A DNA stretch of 62,999 nucleotides, the filler included, from Hyphochytrium catenoides (taxonomy: Eukaryota; Protista; Hyphochytriomycota), in NCBI GenBank assembly GCA_900088475.1. It is 13 parts of 13 records of this genome, joined end to end, with 100 filler letters (N's around TTAATTAATTAA, not from the genome) between each part and the next. Parts side by side here need not be neighbours in the genome. Positions count along the whole stretch, not along the records: positions 17,301 to 35,529 come from FLMG01000661.1; 12 more parts are not named here. One strand, given 5' to 3'. Of this stretch, positions 17,201-35,629 are shown in pieces. The stretch's first letter is position 1. Each line of letters opens with the position of its first letter. The notes beneath the pieces were generated by a model that saw nothing but the letters and a program-made list of their open reading frames with translations, was not told the origin of the DNA and made no database searches. The position numbers and the translations under genes are program-made.

Positions 17201-17688
17201 NNNNNNNNNNNNNNNNNNNNNNNNNNNNNNNNNNNNNNNNNNNNTTAATTAATTAANNNNNNNNNNNNNNNNNNNNNNNNNNNNNNNNNNNNNNNNNNNN
17301 ACTCCAGAACAGTTCCATCACCGCCCTCTTTATCATCTCAGACATCGTGATAAGAAAGTTTGTGGAGGAGATGTTGTGTCCCTGCCTTTGCTGTCGTTCT
17401 CGGGGTCCAGGCCGTCAACATCCTTACTTCATCCGATAGCAAGCAGATGGAAAGCCTACTAGGGAGAGTCGCTAGAGACGACAAACCTTCAGGAACCTTT
17501 TAGCGAATACGTTGTTGCATCATGCAGGTTCAGCGTCGCGGTAAAAGAAGCGAAGATGCCATACGCCTGCTTCTCTGTATGGATACAAATTCCGACTTTG
17601 TGTTATGCAGGAGATAAACGTGGAAAGAGTTGCTAAAGTACACAGAAAGAGAAGGCTGATGTTAATTTCAGGTAGATAGTGCCGGACG

Positions 17689-18968
17689 TTGCAGGAAGAG
17701 AAAAAGCGAGAAGAGAGGAAGAGGCAACAAGGAACCTCAGAAAGGAAAGAGAGTGGGATGAGTTGGATTTTACCAGGGAAAAAGGCTCTTTGGAGGCGCT
17801 CGAAGCGGGAAGCCAAGAGACTTCAGGACAGGGTTGATAGACTGATGGAAAATGATGAGAAGCGGCGGCAATTGCTAATGGAGTTTGAAGAGAAGAAGCG
17901 GCGGCTGGAGAGCAAAAGGAGAGACACGGTAGATTCAGCACCTTATCTTTTCCCCTTTATCTTTATATCTAAAAATGACTCTGATCGCATATGCTTTCTC
18001 CTCAGCTCCTAAGTCAGCCGCTCAGCGGGAGGACAAGAAAAGAAAGAAGTTGGAAGAAGAGCATAAGCTCCAGACCCACATGATCCTCCAAATGCAGCAA
18101 GATGAAATATGTATCAAGAACGTAGTTTCCGAGCGCCTCCCTCCCCAAACCTCACTTGGTATCCATACTGCAATCCTTTCTTCTGCCCCCGTGGCTCAGC
18201 CTCCATGACTGTTCTGTATGCATGCCTGTTCCGTCATTTGCCCCTTGGCACTTTCCAATCATTTGTATACGAGACAAGTTTGTCTTTTCGCTTGGTTGGT
18301 CCTCGGTATACTCTGTCTCTTGCTGAGCTGACGGACATCTTCAACCAGAAATGGCCAGAAATGGAGCTGACCGCACGGGATGCAGAAAGAAAAATAAATG
18401 TTGACCAGCACAGCACAGCACAGAAAGCAACAGGTAGGGAGAAAGATGTGGAAGGGCTGAAAGCGGACGCCGACCAAGAGCACCGCCAGAGCCAGCACCC
18501 TAAAGATAGACAGATCTGGCCAGCAGGGGCCAGAGTGGGAGAGGATGCGGAGGAAAGATGGGAAGGGAAAACGAGAGTAAGAAGGGGGAAGACGAAGGTC
18601 AAACAACAAGGATGTCTTAAGTTCTCGTGATAACTGTCTATTCCTTGACTCCTAAGAAACAGAAAGAGAGCGACAGGCGATGAAATAAAGAAGTTTGAGG
18701 AGGATAGGGCACATCGAGAGCAGGAAAGTAAGAGCCTGGCGAAGCTTAAGGTATTCCTGATGAGTGATCCGAAACATGAGATCGCGGGGCTTTCGGGCTT
18801 GACTGCTACTCCTACAGCCTTGGGAGAGTATAGGTTACATTGAGCAGGACACAGCTGCGCCAAGACTATGGAGTGAATATGTAGTGGCTCCGTCCAGAAG
18901 ACTAACCCCAAGCATAAAATGGGGAAGGGTAGCTTCAAGAGAGCAAAACTGCTGCTCCTACAACTGAT
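17689..18968 (+). pseudogene. Fragmented E/K/R-rich coiled-coil hypothetical gene converging on the recombinase gene
   Basis: Coiled-coil-like segments (EAKRLQDRVDRLMENDEKRRQLLMEFEEKKRRLE; EDKKRKKLEEEHK; DEIKKFEEDRAHREQESK) and one 67-nt GT..AG intron (18751-18817). Exon phases could not all be reconciled. Confidence 0.3.
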
Positions 18969-19599
18969 GGGCTACGGGAAGGTCAATCACCATACTTGGA
19001 GACGACCCTTCGCATCTAGGGGCCAACCATGATGTTATGATACTACCATTCGCAAACATACTGAAGGATAGGTAGAGGTTAATAAGGATACTGCTCTCAA
19101 CCTTGAGAGCCGGAAGGACAACTTCAGAGCATAACTGGTGCTTCTTCTGCGTGAAGGATGGGGATACGAAGAGGTCAGTCATGACGTTAAGTGATTAGTT
19201 CCAAGCATGTCAATCGTCTCATCGTGGGCAAAATTAGCGGTAGTGTACTCACTCTGTGCGTTCTTCCCTTGTCAACTGGAGGGTGCGCTGGTCTACTCAG
19301 AAGTACGTCATGCATCTGTCATCGCCCCACCTACTGTATGGGTCTTGGGCTCCTTCAATGGTAGTGAAGACGTCAAAATGGTTCCACTACTCCAACTCGT
19401 CGCAACTAGGAAGAAAACAGGCAACTAAAGTAGTAGGGGACAATTCTAAGTCATAGCACCCGCCCTCCAGCTTGCCAGCTCGAACGTTGCTTCGAGGATA
19501 CGCAACCTGTACACCGACGCCTCCTCTCCATTTTACTATATAAAAGTTAAGGAGGCTGGCGTTGAGATATTCGCATCGTGCGAACATTGCGTTGCTCAC

Positions 19600-22500
19600 A
19601 GACTATCAAAGGCTAGGTTATGAGTAGGTTGACAGGCGTTGACAAGAGCACCAATGCTACTGCTTCATACCACTCGAGTAGGGAAGTTTCTACGGAGCGA
19701 CTTGGTCAGACGGCAAGGCTCTGGAATTCATTTATCATTTTATACCGTGCTCCTTTGTCCGAATTTTCCTGAAGGAGTCTATTGAGGTTCCGTATTTCTT
19801 TACAAAGTGCTCTAGGTCCTTCTGGCACTCAGTAGACCAAACCTCATAGATTTGCTTTCGGTACAAAGCATTACTCTTCATGGACTTCAGCTCCTTTCTT
19901 CTGTCCATTTCTGACATCCCCCGGGCTATCATTTTACTTTCCGCAACCGCATAGAAGGCTTGGTCCCAATGTCGCATGGGAGGAGCCTTATTCCCGTTTG
20001 TCAGGCTGACGGGCTTGTCATACTGGCGAAGGCAGAAGTGAATATTTCCAGGCGTCTTAGTCAACGATGCAGGAGGTCTGGATACATCCGTCCACCGGGC
20101 AGGAGCTGGTTACGATAAGCATGATACTCAGAGTCTTGTACAGGTGTAAGTTACACCAGCGGGTTTAAGTACCTTCGGCAGGCGATGAATGTATAGTGTG
20201 GCTTGGGCTATCATGCTGATTGCCTCTTGGCCAACCATCCAAGGAGCCCTCCTGGGCGCCACCTGCTCCATGTCCCTCGTTAGGGGGAAGGTGGAGCGGA
20301 TGGCTTTCCTCGGGAGGTACTTCCATCCCATTGCTTGTTGACGCCTCTGAAAGGAAGAAAGTCAGATTTATGGTCAAACCAGTCCACTTACTTTGTCCCG
20401 CCATTTACCGGTACCTGCAATGGATGATGGTGTACTCCTGTCAGCAGGCGGTGTCATACCAGGCATTGCAAGGTATCGGTTCTCCATCTGCTACAGGTGG
20501 ATTTTATCAAGAAGATAAGGATGGGGATAATCCAATTGTCTTTGCGTTCTAGCTACTACTCACCTGGAATCTACATCTATGAGCAATTTTCTCTCGCATC
20601 TGCCGGTATGCCGCGTCAACGAGTTCCGCAAATCCCCCCTGGATCTCCACCATTTCTGATACCACGTTCGGTAGTCCATGCTCCGGAACCTCTGGAAGCC
20701 CCAGCATCATTCTCAATACGTTCACCTTTCCAACCAGCAGATCGAGCTTCGGAATCAACCGGCGACCATCCGCCCCACTGAGCTCATTCCCTTTCATACT
20801 CACGTGACGGATTAAACTGTCCAGGAACTCCATTCCTGGGTTCGTCGAAAAGTTGGTGGGAATCGAATTTCCCGCTTTCCGAAGAAAGTCGCTCATGAAC
20901 CGGTGCAGACAGGCTTCGTTATCCTCTGGTAGATGCTTCCTAGGGATTAAGGCAAACCCAAAACACACCGAAGTCAAGGGGTCAACTTTACGATGGGCTT
21001 ATATACTATGGTTATCTTCTTACGTCCACGACACGTGAATCTTCTGGAAATACCACCATTCAGCCGTGTCATCCCGCTTTGTCTTCAATTGCGTGATCTG
21101 CTGCCGCCCTCGGCCATGCTCGGCATAGTCAAAGTAGACATCACTTCAGAACCAGGTATACGATTGGTCAGGACCACATCTCCTAAAGGAATACTTCTTA
21201 TTCTAACTGCGTTCAATTACCTTTCCCATGGACCACTACTTCGAATCTCGGCGTCCGAGGCGCCACAGCGAGCAGCCCAGTCAACGGCTGACCTAGGAAA
21301 AACATCTGTGTGTTAAAGCCGCATAGCTAATGTGAAAGATCTCGATATGTATAAACTTTTCAGACATGTACCTTCTACAGCTGTGGCTGGTGAGGCCCGA
21401 TCCATCCAGATATACCCTCTCAAAGATGTAAGTGATGCTCTAGCGAAAGAAGCATATGCCGAGTGAAGGAGAGGCCAAGTGAGAAGAAGGACAAGGCAAT
21501 GTCTCAACATCATGACCTTTTGAAATACCCAGTAGACTATAAGTAAGAGAGAGGAGTTCCAAAAAAGTAAGCAAGGAAGAGGGTCACGACATCAATTGAG
21601 AACTATACTATCGAGGCCCGCGGAACATACCTTAAAGAACTCGTCTGCCGATATCGCGTCTCGAGAAACAATCGCCGTACCCTTCCTCTTCCTCGGCGGG
21701 CAAACTGGGCGGCCCTCAAACCTGAATACAGGTCCAGAGAGATCCTTACCAAGGATAACATGAAGCGCAACTATCGCTAGCAGAGTCAAAACCGGACACA
21801 GCTCTGGCTTAGACCCGGGTTTCGGAATAACGTCTTACAGAACGCTAACAGAGTAACATTTAGATATCCTCTTCTTGAATGATTGTCATGAAGCTGCCAA
21901 AGTCGCACCTCTGTTAGACGCCTTCGTAAGCTTTCCCTTCTTATTACGAAAATGTAGATAGAGAAAGGGTGGTATGCCATNNNNNNNNNNNNNNNNNNNN
22001 NNNNNNNNNNNNNNNNNNNNNNNNNNNNNNNNNNNNNNNNNNNNNNNCGAAAGTGAGCTGCTCAATCTCCGACCTTCGGCTGAACGTAGCATGACAGACA
22101 TGGAACATCGCCCACAGAGTAAGATTCGTCATAATGCCTAGGACACCATCAGCGCAACATCAGTTTAGAGGCCCCTAAAACGTAAACGTTGCAAAAGCAC
22201 ACATACATCCGGGAGCCAGTACGGCGCTAACTTCGTCATCTGGCATGACCCTAAGCTCACTTCTTATCCGTAGCATGTCTTCCAAATCATATACTTTGGC
22301 TCTTTTAACGGAGTTCCCTGCCCTGTATAAGTCACCTCTTTACTGGTCGATTAAGTCCTATTAAAAGCGATATGAGCTATGGCTTTATCACTGTCATCAT
22401 CCCGGACTGACAATCTGACCTTTGTTGGCTTCTTATTCATCGGGTTTCTATCTCCCGCAAAGCCGTTCTGATCATGGTACTGACGGAGCTGTGTAACAGC

Positions 22501-23340
22501 GGCCTTCAGAGTTGCTTCGCCCTTGCCTTTCCCTTTAATGGCAGGATTGCCTCCACTTCTGCCAGTACGAATGTATTCATTCTTTGGGGTTACCAGATAA
22601 CCTGTTTGCGTAGAAGTATAGTTCAGTTCAGTAACCTTAAAACCGTGCTCCTTGCTCCTTGCGACCCATGTACTTACGCAGAAAGCCGTGTAGCTGATGC
22701 TCCTTGATAGGAAGATCTTTCTTTAGGTCTACTTTCTCGTTGAAAGCACTCTCGCAAAAGACTTTCAGCTGGTCGACATAGTCTGTCTGGGTAGTATACC
22801 GATGGCCGGTCGGTCGATGTGTCGCAATCTGCCTTATGAGTGCCTGGGCAGCATGATTACCTTTATGCTCTGCGGACAGTCTCGTGCTACCCAGTCGCTT
22901 ATCCGCGGACAAACTAGGACCCTCTCCATTGCTACCAAGATCGCTGGTCGTCCTCCCGCTAGGGCCATGATCATGCCCATTGTTCCAATCGCCTTTGTTG
23001 GAGGAGGAGGGCTCTGGTAATACCGTAACGTCGCCGTTTCCTACGTCCTCCTCATTTCCGTCGTCTGCTGCCTTGCGCTTCCTCGGGTTGCTCTGTCCTT
23101 TCTTCGAACCAGGACCACCTGTCTTTCGGTCCGTGTTTGCTCCAACTACCACTCCACCGTTTGACAGTTGATTCTTCTTGCTTCGGGATTGAGCCTCAAC
23201 AGCCTTGCGGCGCGCCTTACCTTTGCGTTTCGCTTGCTGCACCCCGCGGGTTTGAGCCTGAGCACTTGAAGGGAGGATGCCCCTTACCATTATACCTGCC
23301 CAATGGCTGCTAGAGGACGTATACGGCGGTCAACAAAGTA
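19600..23340 (-). mobile_element. Crypton-like tyrosine-recombinase DNA transposon (boundaries not determined)
   Basis: Spliced YR gene with no recognisable RT/RNase H nearby. A YR with spliceosomal introns and a GCR1_C-like tail is the known Crypton architecture. The segment lacks the GA/CT microsatellites typical of host DNA. Confidence 0.7.
19735..23290 (-). CDS. Intron-rich tyrosine recombinase (Crypton-like, ~880 aa) with GCR1_C-like C-terminus; one in-frame TAA, possibly a young pseudogene
   Basis: 12 exons: 23290-22678, 22601-22420, 22357-22207, 22137-21909 (spans N gap), 21833-21631, 21439-21372, 21292-21221, 21143-21024, 20939-20564, 20490-20415, 20346-20173, 20105-19735; all junctions are phase-compatible. 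Motifs in order: TQTDYVDQLKVFCE..LPIKEHQLHGFL (core-binding-like), ATFSRRSEIEQLTF (box I Arg), FRNKKGK, ELCPV..L..GPVFR, TSHSCRRSAVDWAARCG (HxxR), IRSSGPWES (W), DVYFDY (Tyr). Premature TAA at 22342-22340. Confidence 0.85.
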
Positions 23341-24289
23341 GAAAGGAGCACGGTCTCATCCGTGCTTCGTTGTTCCTCCCCTCCTCTTTTCTGGTGCTGC
23401 GGCCAGCCCTCCTCCCTCTAATGGAGAAGCGCTTACGTAGACTGTTAGCTGGACTAATCGCTCTACCTCTTCCCCTCGGAAAGGCCGATGTCCACCGACC
23501 AGCGAGCTTTGGGTCCCCCGATGAGCAATGGAGATCACCAGTCGACCACGACAAGTAGGATGTGGCTTCGGCGCAGCGGCAGGAGCAGCAGCAGCAGCAG
23601 AAGGAAGAGGAAAAGAAGAGCAGAGGAGGAGAAGGGCTTCTTTATGATGGAATGGATTCGTAGAAAAACCAAGGTAGTTAGTTCTACAAGAACCGAAAGT
23701 AGACCTTTAACAACCAAAATAAGCCTCCACATCTCCCCCTGGGGTAGTAATGGCCCTCCCTCCTCACCTCATCATCGCCGTCGGGCCCGCTCTGGGTCTG
23801 GTCTCTGGTCTGGTTGGGCTTGTCGTTCCATCCGCTTCCATCCCCTCCTCACCGCAGCGGCGGGCGATAACCGATGATGATGAAGGATGCTGCTGCTGCT
23901 GCGCCTTGTGCTCGACGATAAGCTTTTCTAGACAGGAACAGCTGCCAGATCCTCTGATACACTGGCCGCCCCAATGCCAGGCATGGTCAGCGTAGACACT
24001 GACTTCTGCCACTCTTCTGCAAACAAAGGAAGGGTTTGTTGCTATCTTCCCACCCCTGATCTTCTTACTAAGCGACCTCTAGGACTGTCGTTGCCCATGT
24101 ACTCACCTTGAGACGTATCGCTCTCGCTGGTGTAGTCATCGCACCTTCTCTGGCCCCTGTTTGCTCTCTCGGGGTACTTCCTTCTCCGTCTCTTTTCACT
24201 GGGGAGCTGTTTCTTGGTCTTGATTACTTTTTTGGGCCCTCCCTGGTTAAAGATATTTGTTGCCGGCTCAGGTGCACAGAACGATAGAG

Positions 24290-27200
24290 ATGGGCACAGA
24301 TCAGGTTACTAGCAATTCCACTCCTTCTCCTCTGGCTGAGGATGGGGAACCGTTTGTCATGTTAGACGATAATGGAGCAAGGGATGAAGAAATCCGGGAG
24401 CACTTCCGACGGCCTGCTTCCACAAGAAGGAAGACTGGACTCCTTCCCGTCATTCTCTTTGCTCTATCCCTACCCTTCTTGGGCCTCTGGATTGCGGTGG
24501 GGTTCATCCTTACTAGACCTCCCTGGCTACTGGCAGTCCTCTCCTGGATGGTGGTCGCTTTCTGCTGCTATCTTCCTGCACAACTAGGAGGTCCGTTAGA
24601 GGCAGGTCGAGGGCTAGTAGAAGGCTACAGCTTTCAGAGCACTATCTTAGGTAAGATCAGAGTAATCAAGAAAAAAAGACGTCCGCATGCCATCGTAGTA
24701 GAGATTTCCAAGCCTGAGATCAATCCTCGGGTGCATTCTTTGTGATTGTGTCTTTACTTTGCAGTTCCGTAGTCAGTGCTTACTTCATCCTTTGCTAATG
24801 CCACTCTGGCGTTACCTCTTTGAGCTCTCTCGCTGTTCACGTCACTACTCGATCACTTCATCTTTCACTGTCAGTGTTGGTCTCATCTCCTTCATGATAG
24901 TCCATGCAGGCATCATTGTTTGATTAGCTTTTCTCGTGCACGCGGTCTTTGTCCTCTTCTTGTTGCGCTAAGACCATTTTCCTAACAGATATACCTGCTA
25001 TGCTGTTGCTTATCCTGGCCCTCATGGTCACGCTCTCTCGAAGTCTTACTACGTACACACAGCGAGGCAAGGCTGTAGCGGTGTCTTTTACCCTTTTCGG
25101 CTTGAATTTGGCCTTCATCCTCGCCAAAGGCTTCCTCCTTGAGTCTTGGAGTACCAAGGCACCAGCCGTCGGTAGGGCGATCCGAACTATTTCTCACTAT
25201 CCAATGTGAGTTCTCTTGGCGCTTTATTGCTAGTCTTGCACGCTGGACGTTACTTTCGCTTAGCGGGACCTTACGTTGCTTAGATTACGGTATCCGTGGC
25301 GCTCTTTAGCAAACACCAGCCTTTCATCCCGATATCTGTGGTCTCGTTGAGCGTCAATTGACTGAGTTTGTGCTTCTTCTTGGTTCAACCTGTTCTGCGT
25401 TTCAAAGACCTCTCGTTGATGGTGTTTCTATGACTTTGCTGGACTTGTATGGCAGTTCACTGATGCTTGGTGGCCTATTACAGCGCTGCTATTGGTGCTC
25501 TCCGCCCTAAGCCCTTTACTGGTCGCGTGCTCTATTATCCGGTGCTGGCTCCCTCGGTACTTCGATCGACTAGAGGCTTTGGAAAAGGAGTTACTAGACA
25601 AAGAAATAGTTACCAAGCACCAGCTGGGTTATGAGCAGAAAATCATCGCAGGGCTAGGGACCATACATGTACCTTACAGTCCCAGCGGTGACAAGGTGGA
25701 GAATGGTGGAGGAGAGAAGAGCAAAGGACCCGCTCCCGTCATAGTTCTTCTTCATGGGTACGCCGCAGGGAATGGCTTTTGGTTAGCCAATCTAGCGTAT
25801 CTAGCTAGCCACTTTGAGGTGTATGCAGTCGAATGGCTGGGAGTAGGAAGAAGTCAGAGACCGGCCTTTAAGGCTTCTTCGGTGGGTCACTTTGCGAAAT
25901 TTCGGACTTGTTTCTTCCTCCTAAACTCTTCTCTCTCCGCTCACAACTTCTGCTGGTTCGAGTGCTGCGTAATAGCGTAGCCTCGCGACGCGTTCTTGGT
26001 TTGAATGGGTAGTACGTTTCCTCTCTTATACTTTTATTACCCTACGCAGTCCCTCATTGTCCATAGAAGTTGGCCTCCTGCTACAGCTATAATGTCTCAA
26101 CTCCATGTACTCTGCGCCTCCATTAATAGCGTCTCTGTGGATAACCTTCTCCCCTATCCCGCTAGTTTGAGGAGACAATCGACTTTTTTGTTGATCCACT
26201 CGAAGATTGGAGGATAGCCGTGGGACTCGAGAAGTTCATCATACTGGGGCATAGTATGGGGTGAGGTTTGTCTTGTCTTCCCTCATCGTAAAAGATCGTC
26301 AACTGGTCCGTGGCGGCTTTCCATGTCATTGTTTCGCTTGTTGTCGTAGTTTCTGTCTTCCATAGCTGTTTATCTCATGCAGCAGGCTCTCTTGTCACAT
26401 GTCTGCCCGTAGTACCTCGTCCCTTTAGACCACCGGTTGCTTGGGGACATAATGACCGTTGACTCCCTTGTTGTTTACCTCTCATGGCACGCGATTGCTC
26501 CTGCAGAGCTATATATTCCACCTACTACGCTTTAAAGTACCAAGACAGAGTCTCGCATCTGATTTTGGGTAAGTTGATCCAACCGCCTACCCTGCTAGTG
26601 ATCCATTGTCGATTAAGTTCTCTCGTCAAAGAGTATCTTCATTTGCTATCTTTGAGTGGTGATATTTCATGAAGTCGCCATAGTATACTTGCTTGGAAGG
26701 TGCAGTCACTTCCATCTCCTACGTTGGTGTATCTTCTATATAACTACGACCTTCGCATTAATTCACCCTGTCGCAGCAAGCCCAGCGGGGATGGGAGCGA
26801 GACCGGAAGAAGACGCTTTCGCAAGAAAAAATTTAGCTGTCCGTCTCGTTATTGCTCTTTGGGGTTTGGCGATTGGTCCAATGGCGGTAGTCCGCTGGGC
26901 AGGACCACTTGGGCCATGGCTGATGGGAACGATAGCGAACAGAAGGATGGAGGTAAGAGACGGATTGAATGACTGCTCTTCTGTTGACAAATTGCTCGTC
27001 ATCTATGAACTTTCCTTCGGTTTGCTCTAACATGTAAAAGCGATACCTTTAACTTACTCTTGGTTCCATCCCAAGCGTTCATTGGTCCAGACGGAGTTAC
27101 TCCAGCGTCTTACCTCTCGTTTGCCCTAAACAGTGGATGCCAAAGACTAGCTATCTTCGCTCAGGAGAGGTGGATCTGCCTCTCCTTATCTCCTATACAT

Positions 27201-27704
27201 ATCAGAATTGGGCGCATGAAGCCTCAGGGGAGCTTTGCCTTCCTCTGATCCTAGCTCCAGGAGCCTATGCGCAGCGCCCATTAGACAAAGTCATCCGTCC
27301 TGGAGCTCTCTCCTGTCCACTCTCCATCATGTAAGAGAAGACATACGGACAGAGCGCCAGCTTTGGCTGAGTCCTTTCGTTCTGCATTGCCGTATCTTTT
27401 GCTATACTCTCCTCTCCGAGTTCTCTTCTCTCCCAACTTGACTGTTCTGGAGTCAACCATCAGGTGCTTACGATTGTTTATGGTTCGCGGCTCCCGCGTG
27501 TGTGCATGCAGGTATGGCGGAGGACCGGACTGGATGACGAAAGAGCATGGACAGGCTGTAGTAGAGACATTGCGGAAGGCAGGCGAACCAGTGGACTTTC
27601 TCTTGGTGCCCTATGCGGGCCATCAAGTCTTTCTTGATAGCCCTAAAGAGTTCAACGCAATGGTTGTAAAGACCACCAGGAAACTAGGCACTCTGAAGCT
27701 CTAA
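24290..27704 (+). CDS. ABHD4/ABHD5 (CGI-58/Ict1/Cld1)-like alpha/beta hydrolase-acyltransferase with N-terminal multi-TM region
   Basis: Spliced motifs [40 protein letters not shown] (GxSxG intact), [14 protein letters not shown]|[22 protein letters not shown] (HX4D); stop at 27704. Upstream hydrophobic exons 24290-24650 and ~24989-25167 join in phase (less certain). Confidence 0.85.
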
Positions 27705-29075
27705 CCGCCGGAGGGAAGCTTTTCAGTGGATTTAATAGTACTTGACAGGCTGGAAATAACAGCTCTAGACAGGAAATGTTCGAAAAAGATACTTTCTTCT
27801 CTTCTCGAGCTCATGCCAGTGCATCTACCACGCCAGATGCAGCGGAACAAGTGGTCAAAATCACGTGTGGCGAAAATTGGAAAAGGAACAGCGCCTGCTG
27901 CAAAAAAAGAGAGACCTTGCAAGGCTAGCTCCGCCAAGGGCAACGGCAAGACTATTCATAAAGAGGGTGCAAGAGTGATGTGGCTTTTTAATAAGAGATA
28001 CGTAAGGGAACACAACCTGAAGGCAGCTTTGAAGATCGTAGGTAGAAAAAGTAGAGGTCGACAAGAAAGATTCACAGATCGTTCTGCTCAAGGTCTGGCA
28101 TGTCCGCTTTAAGCACTTCTAGATTAGGGACACAGCCTCTTTTTATAAAGCCCTTGATAGCAAATAGGTAAAGCGCGTATTGACAGCGCATGAAGGAGAT
28201 ATGGCTCCCAGGCCTTACGTCAGTTGGGTGGCCTCCTCTCTACACTTACCTAGCTCCGACGGGCCGCCTGAACCTCTTCTTTGCACTAGTTGAGACCTGT
28301 TGTTGACGAAAGAGCCTCCAGAGTGGTCTCTGTGTGTGTGTTGAGTCTATTGTATGAATCTTTTTATGGACGGCGATGGGAAGCTCGATGAGAAGCTAAG
28401 GCGATGAGAAACGGATGCACTCACTTGCTCCTCGGTCTCAATGATCTCTTTGAAGCTTCGTCTGCAGAGCTTGAAGACTGAACCTCCGATACCGCTACAT
28501 TCATGATTCTCAGTGATACAATCTACATATTCAAAAGGAGGAGGATACCTATTCCGAATAATTAGGTCCAGCTTTAGTGTACCCATTCCCACCCATCCCT
28601 TAGTTATGGCCTCGAATAACTTTGGGCCTAACCACATCCCCAAAAGATATATGGCGAAGACTATGCCCGAGAGGCCGGAGTTACTCACCCCGTCCTAGAG
28701 TTTACAGGGGGCTAACCCCCACAAGTCGGGGGCACGTCTGGTCTGCACACAGTCATTTTGAGGGAAAAGTTGCTGAAGAGCTTTCGCAGATCTCTGCCAC
28801 GATGTGAGACTGAGATCCCAAACGAAGATCATCTATCGCATAAGGGCTTCCTGACAGGGAAAGCTCCATCCTTGAGAAAGGGGACAAAAGCAGCTAAGAA
28901 TAGTCCACAAGGAACTAGCTGAGGCGATCAACAAAGGCTACGTTGGAGAAAGGCGCACTGATCTGTCCTTGGCGCGACTTCTAACTTCAAGGTTGGCACA
29001 TTTGGGTCATCTTCTTGAAGGGCTATGGCTGTTCTCACGTTCATTGATCTACGCATCCCCATCTGCTTAACCTAG

Positions 29076-33350
<4,275 letters not shown>

Positions 33351-33731
33351 AGAGCTAGCCAGTATATGGACCAGAGAAGACACATGTAAGGAAGATAGGA
33401 AACAGATCAAGGCAGCAGTAAGCGGAAGACAACTAAGCGAGTGTTTGAGACTAGATCTGCCTTTACGCCTATCTCCTAAAAGTAAAGCAGAGCAGCTTGC
33501 CGCATAGCTTAGCATCAGCAGACCCCATTTGGCTCTCCGGCCTTCCACCAAGGCGCAGCGCCTGATGGTGAGAATAGCGCTGCAGTGGCTCGAACATTGT
33601 ACTATGTAATGTCAAGGGAGTTTGTGAGATAGACCTAAAGCAGAAAGGATGACAAAGCATGGGGGAGAGCGCGGTAAGGGCACCGAGGATAATGGGCCGC
33701 GTAGGAGAGAGAGAGAGAAGTAGCACACACC

Positions 33732-35297
33732 TTATTGGAAAACTTTGCCCTGGTAGTTCTCCTCAGAGTAAAAGGTGCAAATAACATTCTTCCCATCAAA
33801 AAGGCGACCATGTAACGCTCCCAGCGCCTGAAGGGAGGAGGGGTGAGAACAAAGTCGTCACAAAAGCAGCTCCTTGTATTCGCTGTCATCTCTGATTTAC
33901 CAGCTCCCGCCCTAATCCTTCCCAAACTTCCTCCTATCCCTGTTCTTCAGGAATAAGCACACAACAGTTACTAGCTTCATCACCTACGCACAATGACAGC
34001 CCCTCCTCACTCCTCTTACGCTTCTGACAGGAGTCTTCTAGCTCACCTTTGCTGCCTCTTCAGTGTTCTCAAACTCAACGAACACACATCCGAGCGCAGG
34101 AACTTCTTTTCCTTCCTCTCCAGGTTTTTGCACGTGGTAGGAAACGACCTTTCCATATTTAGCACACTCGTCATTGATCTCCTCCCCAAGCTCATCCCAC
34201 TCTCCTTCCTCCATGCCCTGAGGGGAAGAAACAAGGTTGGCGAGCTTGATTATCTTGGAAGGATTCTTCAGCGTCAGGCCGAGAGACTTGTTGGCCATAG
34301 CTTCAGCCACCACCTCATCCCAGGACCTGCGGGAGACAGAGTGATGAGGAACCGTAAAATATCGTCAATGCCCCTAACCTCGCAGCCCTATGGGCTCACT
34401 TTTTCCAATTTTACACCTGCTCCCTAGGCCCGCCGTCCCATCAGTTTATCTAAACTTCCGCCGCTCACGCTTCGTGCATCAAACCTCACATCGTCCTGAC
34501 GTCCTCCACTTCCCGCCCTAACTCTAAGTCTTCCGTGTGCCACCTCTGCAGCCCCCCAACCCTATAAATACTCACTTGACAGGTCCCTGAGGTCCAGTGT
34601 ATTTGGCTGGCCTTCCAACTTTCAGATTCTGGCCCATGAAGGGGATGCCATTCAAGCTCAACATGTTGTTGGCCTCTTCTACGCTGCGCAACTCCACGAA
34701 CGCGTATTTGTCGTTCATTCGTGCTGTCACAATGGGGTTACCTGGAGCAGTAGTGAGATGCACCTGCTCCATAGCTGCCCCAAGGAACTCCACGAAGACC
34801 TGCAACGAGGAAGGACATTATGAGGTGTGGGAGCGGGACAGAACGCAAACGCAACGTATAGAATACAAGGCCCGGCTTTTTGTGTGAAAAGGAGAAGAGA
34901 ACACCAGCTGATAAGTGAACGGACAAATCGCCGTAAAGCTAGGACATCCTCTAAAAGTGCAGAGCTGGTTCTATTCCTAGCTTACCTTCTCATCGACGCC
35001 AGGCGGTGTATTGCCTATAAAGAGTTCTCTTGCAACCTTTGTCGCTGAATCAGTGACAGCTAGCGCGTCCGAAGGCAGTGGAGCCTCGCCTTTCAGTTCC
35101 TGCCAAGTCTTGTGCTCTGTCTGGGGTCCTGTATACTTGGTGGGGCGGCCTATTCTCAAATAGTTGCCCATAAAGGGGATGCCTGTAAGATTGAGCATGT
35201 TTGAAGCTTCTTCTACGGAACGGAGCTCTACAAAGGCGAACTTAGGATTCAGCCGGCACGTTACAATTGGGTTGCCCGGACTGGTGTTGAGCTTCAT
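33732..35297 (-). CDS. Splicing factor U2AF large subunit (U2AF65)-like, 5'-partial
   Basis: RRM segments KFAFVELRSVEEASNMLNLTGIPFMG..RIGRP, ARELFIGNTPPG, KYAFVELRSVEEANNMLSLNGIPFMG..KVGRP. C-terminal UHM KLANLV..EEINDECAKYGKV..GCVFVEF|ALGALHGRLFDGKNVICTFYSEENYQGKVFQ* (TAA at 33734-33732). Confidence 0.88.
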
Positions 35298-35629
35298 CTA
35301 AGGAATAAAGTGCCTATGTAAGTCTGCGTAATAGAGGAAGGCAGGGAGCCAGAGAAAGATGATAGAATAAGGGAAGCAGAGGGCTTTGGCAGACAAAGAG
35401 GGACGGAGAGTAATGGCATGGGGAGAGCGGCAGCGGGAAGATAGGCAGCAGAAAGTGCGATGCGAAATGGGGAAAGAATTTGAGGAGGAAGGGGGCGGGC
35501 AAAGCAGGTGCGCGAAACAACGCGCAGGGNNNNNNNNNNNNNNNNNNNNNNNNNNNNNNNNNNNNNNNNNNNNTTAATTAATTAANNNNNNNNNNNNNNN
35601 NNNNNNNNNNNNNNNNNNNNNNNNNNNNN

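Follow-up and report, generated by a model that had tools for sequence, protein, structure and literature searches.

A Divergent, Intron-Rich Gene for a Probable Crypton-Type Tyrosine Recombinase in Hyphochytrium catenoides

Introduction

Crypton-type tyrosine recombinases are rare and patchily distributed, they are poorly catalogued beyond fungi and animals, and their recombination sites are essentially unknown. The window analysed here is a stretch of 62,999 nucleotides (nt) from the protist Hyphochytrium catenoides (Hyphochytriomycota), made of 13 parts of the assembly GCA_900088475.1 joined end to end with 100 filler letters between each part and the next. One of these parts, at positions 17301-35529 of the window (FLMG01000661.1), carries on its minus strand, from 23290 to 19735, a series of short coding segments linked by GT..AG introns. 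The original prediction, drawn from the sequence by a model, read these segments as a hidden gene for a tyrosine recombinase, either Crypton-like or domesticated. The locus raises three questions: whether the segments form a real gene, whether the product is a tyrosine recombinase and, if so, whether the enzyme belongs to a mobile element or to the host.

Evidence for a Tyrosine Recombinase

The locus very probably contains a real gene for a tyrosine recombinase. The enzyme would be very divergent, with the motif order Arg, Lys, His-x-x-Arg, Trp, Tyr in its canonical form. The case rests on comparison of the 13 coding segments (E1 to E13, Table 1) with 13 reference enzymes chosen independently of the window, namely P1 Cre, lambda Int, the Escherichia coli proteins XerC, XerD, FimB and FimE, D6 Dre and six phage enzymes distantly resembling Cre, in whose alignment the catalytic Arg, Lys, His, Arg and Tyr are invariant columns. 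A Cre-family profile built from eight of them (P1 Cre, D6 Dre and the six phage relatives) was run with hmmsearch --max, without filters, against all 726 six-frame stop-to-stop pieces of 17301-35529. Among these pieces, E4 ranked first, E7 second, E2 fourth, E8 seventh and E3 39th, all at colinear positions of the profile, and the probability that at least four of the top seven come from the eight exon pieces is 2e-7. At the motifs themselves, ATFSRRSEI of E4 is matched to atllRssEl of the profile consensus, LTSHSCR of E7 to itgHSvR, and AARCGASDAEIRSSGPW of E8 to aaragvsikeimklgrw.

A chained local alignment, in which each exon is aligned alone and the pieces are forced to follow one another along the profile, gave a concordant picture. 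With the 13-sequence profile, the real exons in their real order scored 245.9. Shuffling the residues 150 times gave 149.9±8.2 (z 11.7), and no shuffle reached the observed score; reversed exon sequences gave 144, segments of the neighbouring genes 146±5, exons of this gene that lie outside the recombinase 159±5 and the real exons in random order 199±12. The Cre-family profile alone yielded a z of 10.7. In the traceback, Arg, Lys, His, Arg and Trp fall on Cre R173, K201, H289, R292 and W315, respectively, and the Arg-to-Trp spacing of 23 residues equals that of Cre. E4 is aligned to Cre 162-181, with the first of its two Arg codons (22078-22076) on Cre R173 and XerD R148, and is identical to XerD 137-156 at 10 of 20 residues; hhalign of E4 against the six-sequence alignment of Cre, lambda Int, XerC, XerD, FimB and FimE also found the correct place (P 0.047), and E8 returned nothing in the same comparison. 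The Lys of E5 lies on Cre K201, in a segment sharing 6 of 10 residues with FimB, the GPVFR of E6 (LF motif) is aligned to Cre 232-240, and E8 is identical to Cre 300-315 at 8 of 16 residues.

The protein would open with a basic N-terminus, probably serving nuclear import. A core-binding domain would begin late in exon 1 and continue through exon 3, exons 4-9 would encode the catalytic domain with the residues in the order given above, and exons 10-13 a helical C-terminal extension. If the enzyme follows the chemistry of Cre, XerD and Flp, its Tyr would attack the DNA and become joined to it by a 3'-phosphotyrosyl link; strands would be exchanged pairwise via a Holliday junction between two short sites.

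Several observations weigh against this identification. The motif DVYFDY places a Tyr at Trp+5 and another at Trp+8, whereas the 13 references have theirs at +9 to +11; the candidate nucleophile, at Trp+8, is one residue nearer the Trp than in any reference, and an alignment with free gaps chose a later Tyr instead. The profile of the six enzymes used without the Cre-like additions is weak (E4 at rank 12, chain z of 3.2), so that it was the Cre-like sequences, added later, that brought out the strong signal. Pairwise searches with BLASTP and phmmer, using Cre, lambda Int, XerC/D and FimB/E as queries against the six-frame pieces, returned no significant exon. In Pfam, every exon was searched at E<=1 and E<=10, with nothing but sub-threshold matches on E13; the recombinase exons matched no family at E<=10, including Phage_integrase, DUF3504, DUF3435 and NDC10_II; these exons are of 22-69 amino acids (aa), and single exons did not reach significance because they are too short alone. 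A PDB sequence search with E6 and E13 gave nothing meaningful, and no relative of E1, E6 or E10 was found in any collection. Finally, the splice junctions are predicted ones, and the catalytic domain is interrupted by an assembly gap on either side of which the reading frames differ by 1 nt at the nominal length of 67 N. All similarity tests were run exon by exon, and in the database searches queries of 22-125 aa are too short to reveal distant relatives.

Searches of Sequence Collections

A close relative of the searched exons is, to judge from these searches, absent from the collections. Word searches with E10 and E1 gave no match, and they missed the window's own proteins too; a word search with the alignment of six bacterial recombinases recovered only near-identical XerD and added no depth to the profile. 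An exhaustive HMMER search of E6 against 1.84 billion protein representatives returned two matches, both of which are spurious because they are internally repetitive and unrelated to recombinases. Metagenome scans with E10 and E6 were empty. Viral scans with E6 and E13 pointed to one locus only, on a phage contig; the match there was judged to be chance because it is antisense to a gene for a terminase.

A different kind of comparison was provided by the Atlas, a feature search based on a protein language model. With E6 as the query, DUF3504 was the best named cluster (0.94, 8 hits) and appeared again at 0.90, followed by the ZMYM2/QRICH1 C-terminal cluster (0.88), DUF3435 (0.87), NDC10_II (0.80) and a cluster named 'Tyr recombinase domain' (0.79). 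The named clusters nearest E6 would be eukaryotic Crypton-type or Crypton-derived families, which agrees with the profile result and is to be read as a lead, not as proof.

Gene Model and Assembly Gap

The junctions of the gene were fixed from the sequence, and phases and stops were then checked segment by segment. None of the 13 open segments contains an in-frame stop, and their phases agree. The introns are GT..AG in 11 of 11 cases, measure 45-191 nt and are poorer in GC (0.35-0.46) than the exons (0.52). Should E4 and E5 be halves of a single exon split by the assembly gap, the model comprises 12 exons and 11 introns over 19735-23290, as originally predicted, and its length of about 870 codons in a consistent frame, plus any hidden by the gap, is close to the ~880 aa proposed at that time. 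For the last intron, the alternative donor listed in Table 1, used with an acceptor before ACG..TPGN, reproduces the version of the original prediction and alters few residues. Synonymous codon usage correlates with that of the neighbouring genes with an r of 0.38 in frame, against 0.05 and 0.26 in the other two frames, and the GC content at third codon positions (GC3) is 0.55 here versus 0.57 in the neighbouring genes. The locus is best explained as a single intact gene that encodes a protein in a eukaryote rich in introns.

The motifs that had suggested a recombinase were found where they had been placed: the Arg codons of FSRRSE at 22078-22073, HSCR at 21385-21374 and the Tyr of DVYFDY at 21127-21125, with RNKKGK in E5, CPV..GPVF in E6 and GPWE ending E8. 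The basic N-terminus is likewise present, in the low-complexity part of E1. The profile ranks and the chained alignment, in turn, bear out the claim of a spliced tyrosine recombinase gene with the catalytic residues in order.

E4 is open into the run of N, and E5 emerges from it open. The gap's length of 67 nt is estimated, and typical introns of the recombinase gene have that size too. From the residue that precedes the gap to the one that follows it, the alignment skips only about two columns of the profile, so little coding sequence need be missing; the gap may conceal a few codons or a short intron.

Table 1. Coding segments of the recombinase gene, assembly gap and repeated motifs, in positions of the window
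Feature	Position	Strand	Description
E1	23290-22678	-	ATG at 23290; donor C/GTAAGT (exon/intron); ~135 aa basic low-complexity N-terminus, then start of putative core-binding domain
E2	22601-22392	-	Putative helix of core-binding (N-terminal) domain; profile columns 70-108 (Cre 81-119, XerD 65-89)
E3	22335-22207	-	Putative linker and start of catalytic domain; aligned to Cre 126-151
E4	22137-22048	-	Box I, ATFSRRSEI, with putative catalytic Arg; open into gap
Assembly gap, 67 N	21981-22047		Length estimated
E5 (or continuation of E4)	21980-21909	-	Putative beta-hairpin Lys, FRNKK; open out of gap
E6	21833-21631	-	CPV...GPVF region, between Lys and HxxR
E7	21439-21372	-	LTSHSCR; His and Arg on Cre H289 and R292
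E8	21292-21221	-	AARCGASDAEIRSSGPW; GPWE at its end; Trp on Cre W315 (His in XerD)
E9	21143-21024	-	DVYFDY; candidate nucleophile Tyr 21127-21125
E10	20939-20564	-	First part of ~330-aa C-terminal extension
E11	20490-20392	-	Coding segment
E12	20346-20157	-	Alternative donor at 20172
E13 and stop	20105-19738; TGA 19737-19735	-	Supposed GCR1_C tail
12-mer copy	19744-19755 (13-mer 19744-19756)	+	Over last codons of recombinase gene
12-mer copy	22642-22653	+	Within intron 1
12-mer copy, inverted	23343-23354		53-64 nt upstream of ATG
Palindrome GGAGCACGG-TCTCAT-CCGTGCTTC	23345-23368		9-nt arms matching at 8/9, 6-nt spacer; 55-78 nt upstream of ATG

C-Terminal Extension

About 330 aa, encoded by E10 to E13, follow the recombinase domain. 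The original prediction had likened their end to GCR1_C, a domain that binds DNA, and the present searches do not support this likeness. Pfam at E<=1 gave no GCR1_C match on E13, the only matches being the sub-threshold DUF1877 and NHase_beta_N; the same exon gave no signal in PDB, noise only in the Atlas and no relatives in the viral scan. Single-sequence AlphaFold models of E13 and E10 are helical, with confidence values (pLDDT) of 54 and 53 that are too low for a fold search.

The family argument attached to this tail does not hold either. GCR1_C had been taken as a mark of both CryptonF and CryptonS elements; CryptonF does combine the recombinase with GCR1_C (Kojima & Jurka 2011, PMC3212892), whereas in CryptonS GCR1_C is not encoded and the C-terminus is conserved, and animal Cryptons are without a C-terminal domain (PMC3212892).

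Mobile Element or Host Gene

Within the window, it is well supported that the locus represents a tyrosine recombinase gene of the Crypton kind, that is, one for a stand-alone eukaryotic recombinase, because the gene is not accompanied by one for a reverse transcriptase, a methyltransferase or a DDE transposase, and because E6 lies nearest DUF3504, DUF3435 and NDC10_II. Pfam searches of the flanking open pieces over the 18 kb recognised an alpha/beta hydrolase alone; they detected no reverse transcriptase, as had been predicted, nor any RNase H, methyltransferase, DDE transposase or capsid-type domain. The earlier choice between a Crypton-like and a domesticated recombinase stands as far as the resemblance of E6 to Crypton-type families in the Atlas is concerned, and loses the GCR1_C tail that was part of it.

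Between these two readings, the recombinase of a Crypton-type DNA transposon appears likelier than a host gene recently derived from one, and may be called fairly probable. The transposon is favoured because the catalytic residues are intact and annotated orthologues are absent, and the host gene because of the heavy intronisation, the host-like composition and the snug single locus.

A domesticated recombinase, meaning a Crypton-derived, single-copy cellular gene comparable with KAT1, Cbf2/Gcr1 or the DUF3504 genes, would have kept its catalytic residues for a function of the host, such as programmed rearrangement or switching. We consider this possible, on the unlikely side, and several features of the locus speak for it and against mobility. 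The gene has 11 or more spliceosomal introns, in the short-intron style of its neighbours, which it also resembles in GC3 and codon usage, and it fits tightly among host genes, lying less than 1 kb from the next gene on either side. Neither a second copy or fragment of the gene nor any long repeat was found in the 18-kb piece, and the single copy examined shows no recognisable short terminal direct repeats. A study of Glomhopper elements, moreover, ties heavy intronisation to diversification or domestication (PMC13465315). On the other hand, introns are compatible with mobility (PMC9977147; PMC13465315), since active Cryptons of Chlamydomonas also carry them (PMC9977147). All six catalytic positions are filled here, whereas the known domesticated Crypton recombinases, namely DUF3504 genes, Cbf2 and Gcr1, no longer have all of these residues (PMC3212892). 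Annotated orthologues would also be expected for a conserved host gene, and none was found for three exons (E1, E6 and E10).

The locus could also be no recombinase at all, either because a real, lineage-specific gene bears coincidental motifs and a coincidental profile signal, or because the spliced model is wrong. The lack of any exon-level match in Pfam, PDB or the protein collections, the Tyr spacing that is off by one and splice junctions that are predicted ones all fit such an account. It is nevertheless improbable in view of the chained alignment, whose z is 10.7-11.7 while its four kinds of control stay at background level, the five catalytic residues on their correct columns and an independent Atlas look-up that lands on Crypton-type families. 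Least credible, at a very low probability, is that the gene is the recombinase end of a larger mobile or viral element (Starship-like, a DIRS/Ngaro-type retroelement or an integrated virus), for which the nearness of E6 to DUF3435, the domain of Starship 'captains', and a view limited to 18 kb can be cited, but which is opposed by flanks made of housekeeping genes of the same intron style (V-ATPase A, alpha/beta hydrolase and RRM protein) and free of reverse transcriptase, RNase H, methyltransferase and capsid-type domains, and by 11 introns, which are not expected of viral genes.

As separate candidates, a retroelement or a virus was ruled out on the lack of such domains and the many introns. 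The features of DIRS, Ngaro, PAT and VIPER elements were not encountered, the 18 kb containing no reverse transcriptase or RNase H and no long repeats.

Repeated Motif at the Gene

The piece contains three copies of the 12-mer ACCGTGCTCCTT and no more, each of them at the recombinase gene (Table 1). It is the sole non-simple 12-mer with three copies in the piece, and any such triple arose in only 8 of 300 simulated sequences; a 9-mer occurs five times against 0.22 expected, four of these five occurrences being at the recombinase locus. The upstream copy forms half of a lox-like palindrome. Two inverted arms about a 6-nt spacer are the layout of a tyrosine-recombinase core site. Together, 19744-19756 and 23342-23354 make up a perfect 13-nt inverted pair that brackets the coding region, with 3585 nt between the arms. 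On their outer sides the arms are flanked by the 5-nt sequences TTTAT and CTCAT, which agree at 3 of 5 positions, as read from one copy.

The 12-mer and the palindrome could be recombinase-binding sites, element ends, a promoter motif or the product of chance. We infer only that the enzyme may bind the repeated arms CCGTGCTCC, which comprise the palindromic pair before the ATG, the copy within intron 1 and the one at the last codons. A bolder proposal, which we hold to be quite unlikely, is that the locus represents an undescribed lineage of eukaryotic tyrosine-recombinase transposons with readable binding arms at its ends. In such a lineage, the two 13-nt arms would meet in the excised circle to form a lox-like site, and the palindrome would be the joint of an element arm and a look-alike target arm. 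If this were true, it would be the first Crypton-type element with a recombination site readable straight from the sequence.

Comparison with Known Recombinases

With Cryptons in the broad sense (Goodwin 2003; PMC3212892; PMC13465315), the locus shares a eukaryotic gene for a tyrosine recombinase only, with a full catalytic set, as well as spliceosomal introns and the lack of a reverse transcriptase in the 18 kb seen. It differs in having far more introns than most described Cryptons; these are also described without terminal inverted repeats, whereas here the 13-nt inverted pair brackets the coding region.

Among the subgroups, CryptonF elements of fungi, oomycetes and green algae likewise have the recombinase followed by a long C-terminal region, and those active in Chlamydomonas (PMC9977147) share the gene-proximal intergenic position; unlike them, the last exon here is not matched by Pfam GCR1_C (E<=1). 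The CryptonS elements of oomycetes and a diatom are alike in having a C-terminal region after the recombinase and no GCR1_C; their described features are a conserved C-terminal region and TATGG-type termini (PMC3212892). The CryptonA/DUF3504 group, which includes Glomhoppers and the ZMYM, QRICH1 and KCTD1 derivatives, is the one nearest E6 in the Atlas (0.94), but no exon matches Pfam DUF3504, and the ~330 aa at the C-terminus have no counterpart in animal Cryptons.

Of the solved types, the phage recombinases Cre and Dre match best, with Trp rather than His before the Tyr and an Arg-to-Trp spacing of 23. Overall identity to them is far below pairwise detection, and in contrast to these enzymes the present one would be encoded by a eukaryotic gene that introns divide, and would be extended by long stretches at both the N- and the C-terminus.

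Neighbouring Genes

The piece 17301-35529 is ordinary eukaryotic DNA with a GC content of 0.50 and many short introns. The neighbours of the recombinase gene encode an alpha/beta hydrolase, the V-ATPase subunit A and an RRM protein, and their intron style matches its own. The gene for the catalytic subunit A of the V-ATPase, at 29174-32600 (+), is divided into many short exons, and among solved structures these exons are closer to the plant and animal chains than to the yeast one, which makes a host closely related to yeast improbable without bearing on other fungi. Two neighbouring open pieces at 34575-34817 and 34980-35297 (-) encode U2AF65-like RRM segments with 73% identity over 59 aa; they may be exons duplicated in tandem, in which case mutually exclusive splicing would be a candidate, or else belong to a tandem duplicate of a gene.

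The divergent intergenic region of about 1 kb between the recombinase gene and the hydrolase gene contains two CAG/CTG runs, at 23579-23603 and 23888-23911, in opposite orientation and about 290 nt apart. Beyond it, an open piece at 24251-24742 (+) contains an ATG and a hydrophobic stretch and has a weak, sub-threshold match to TctB (E 3e-4). The alpha/beta hydrolase gene, which continues at 25420, probably has its first exon here, with a membrane anchor.

Significance

The recombinase gene looks intact and is very divergent, with an exon, E6, that is without a relative among 1.84 billion proteins, and it comes with a candidate binding motif. For now, the finding amounts to a reliable annotation of a gene that had been overlooked, and is no surprise. 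If the gene is mobile, it would add one more lineage to the eukaryotic recombinase transposons. If it is domesticated with its active site intact, the host would have retained a working site-specific recombinase, of which there are few cases.

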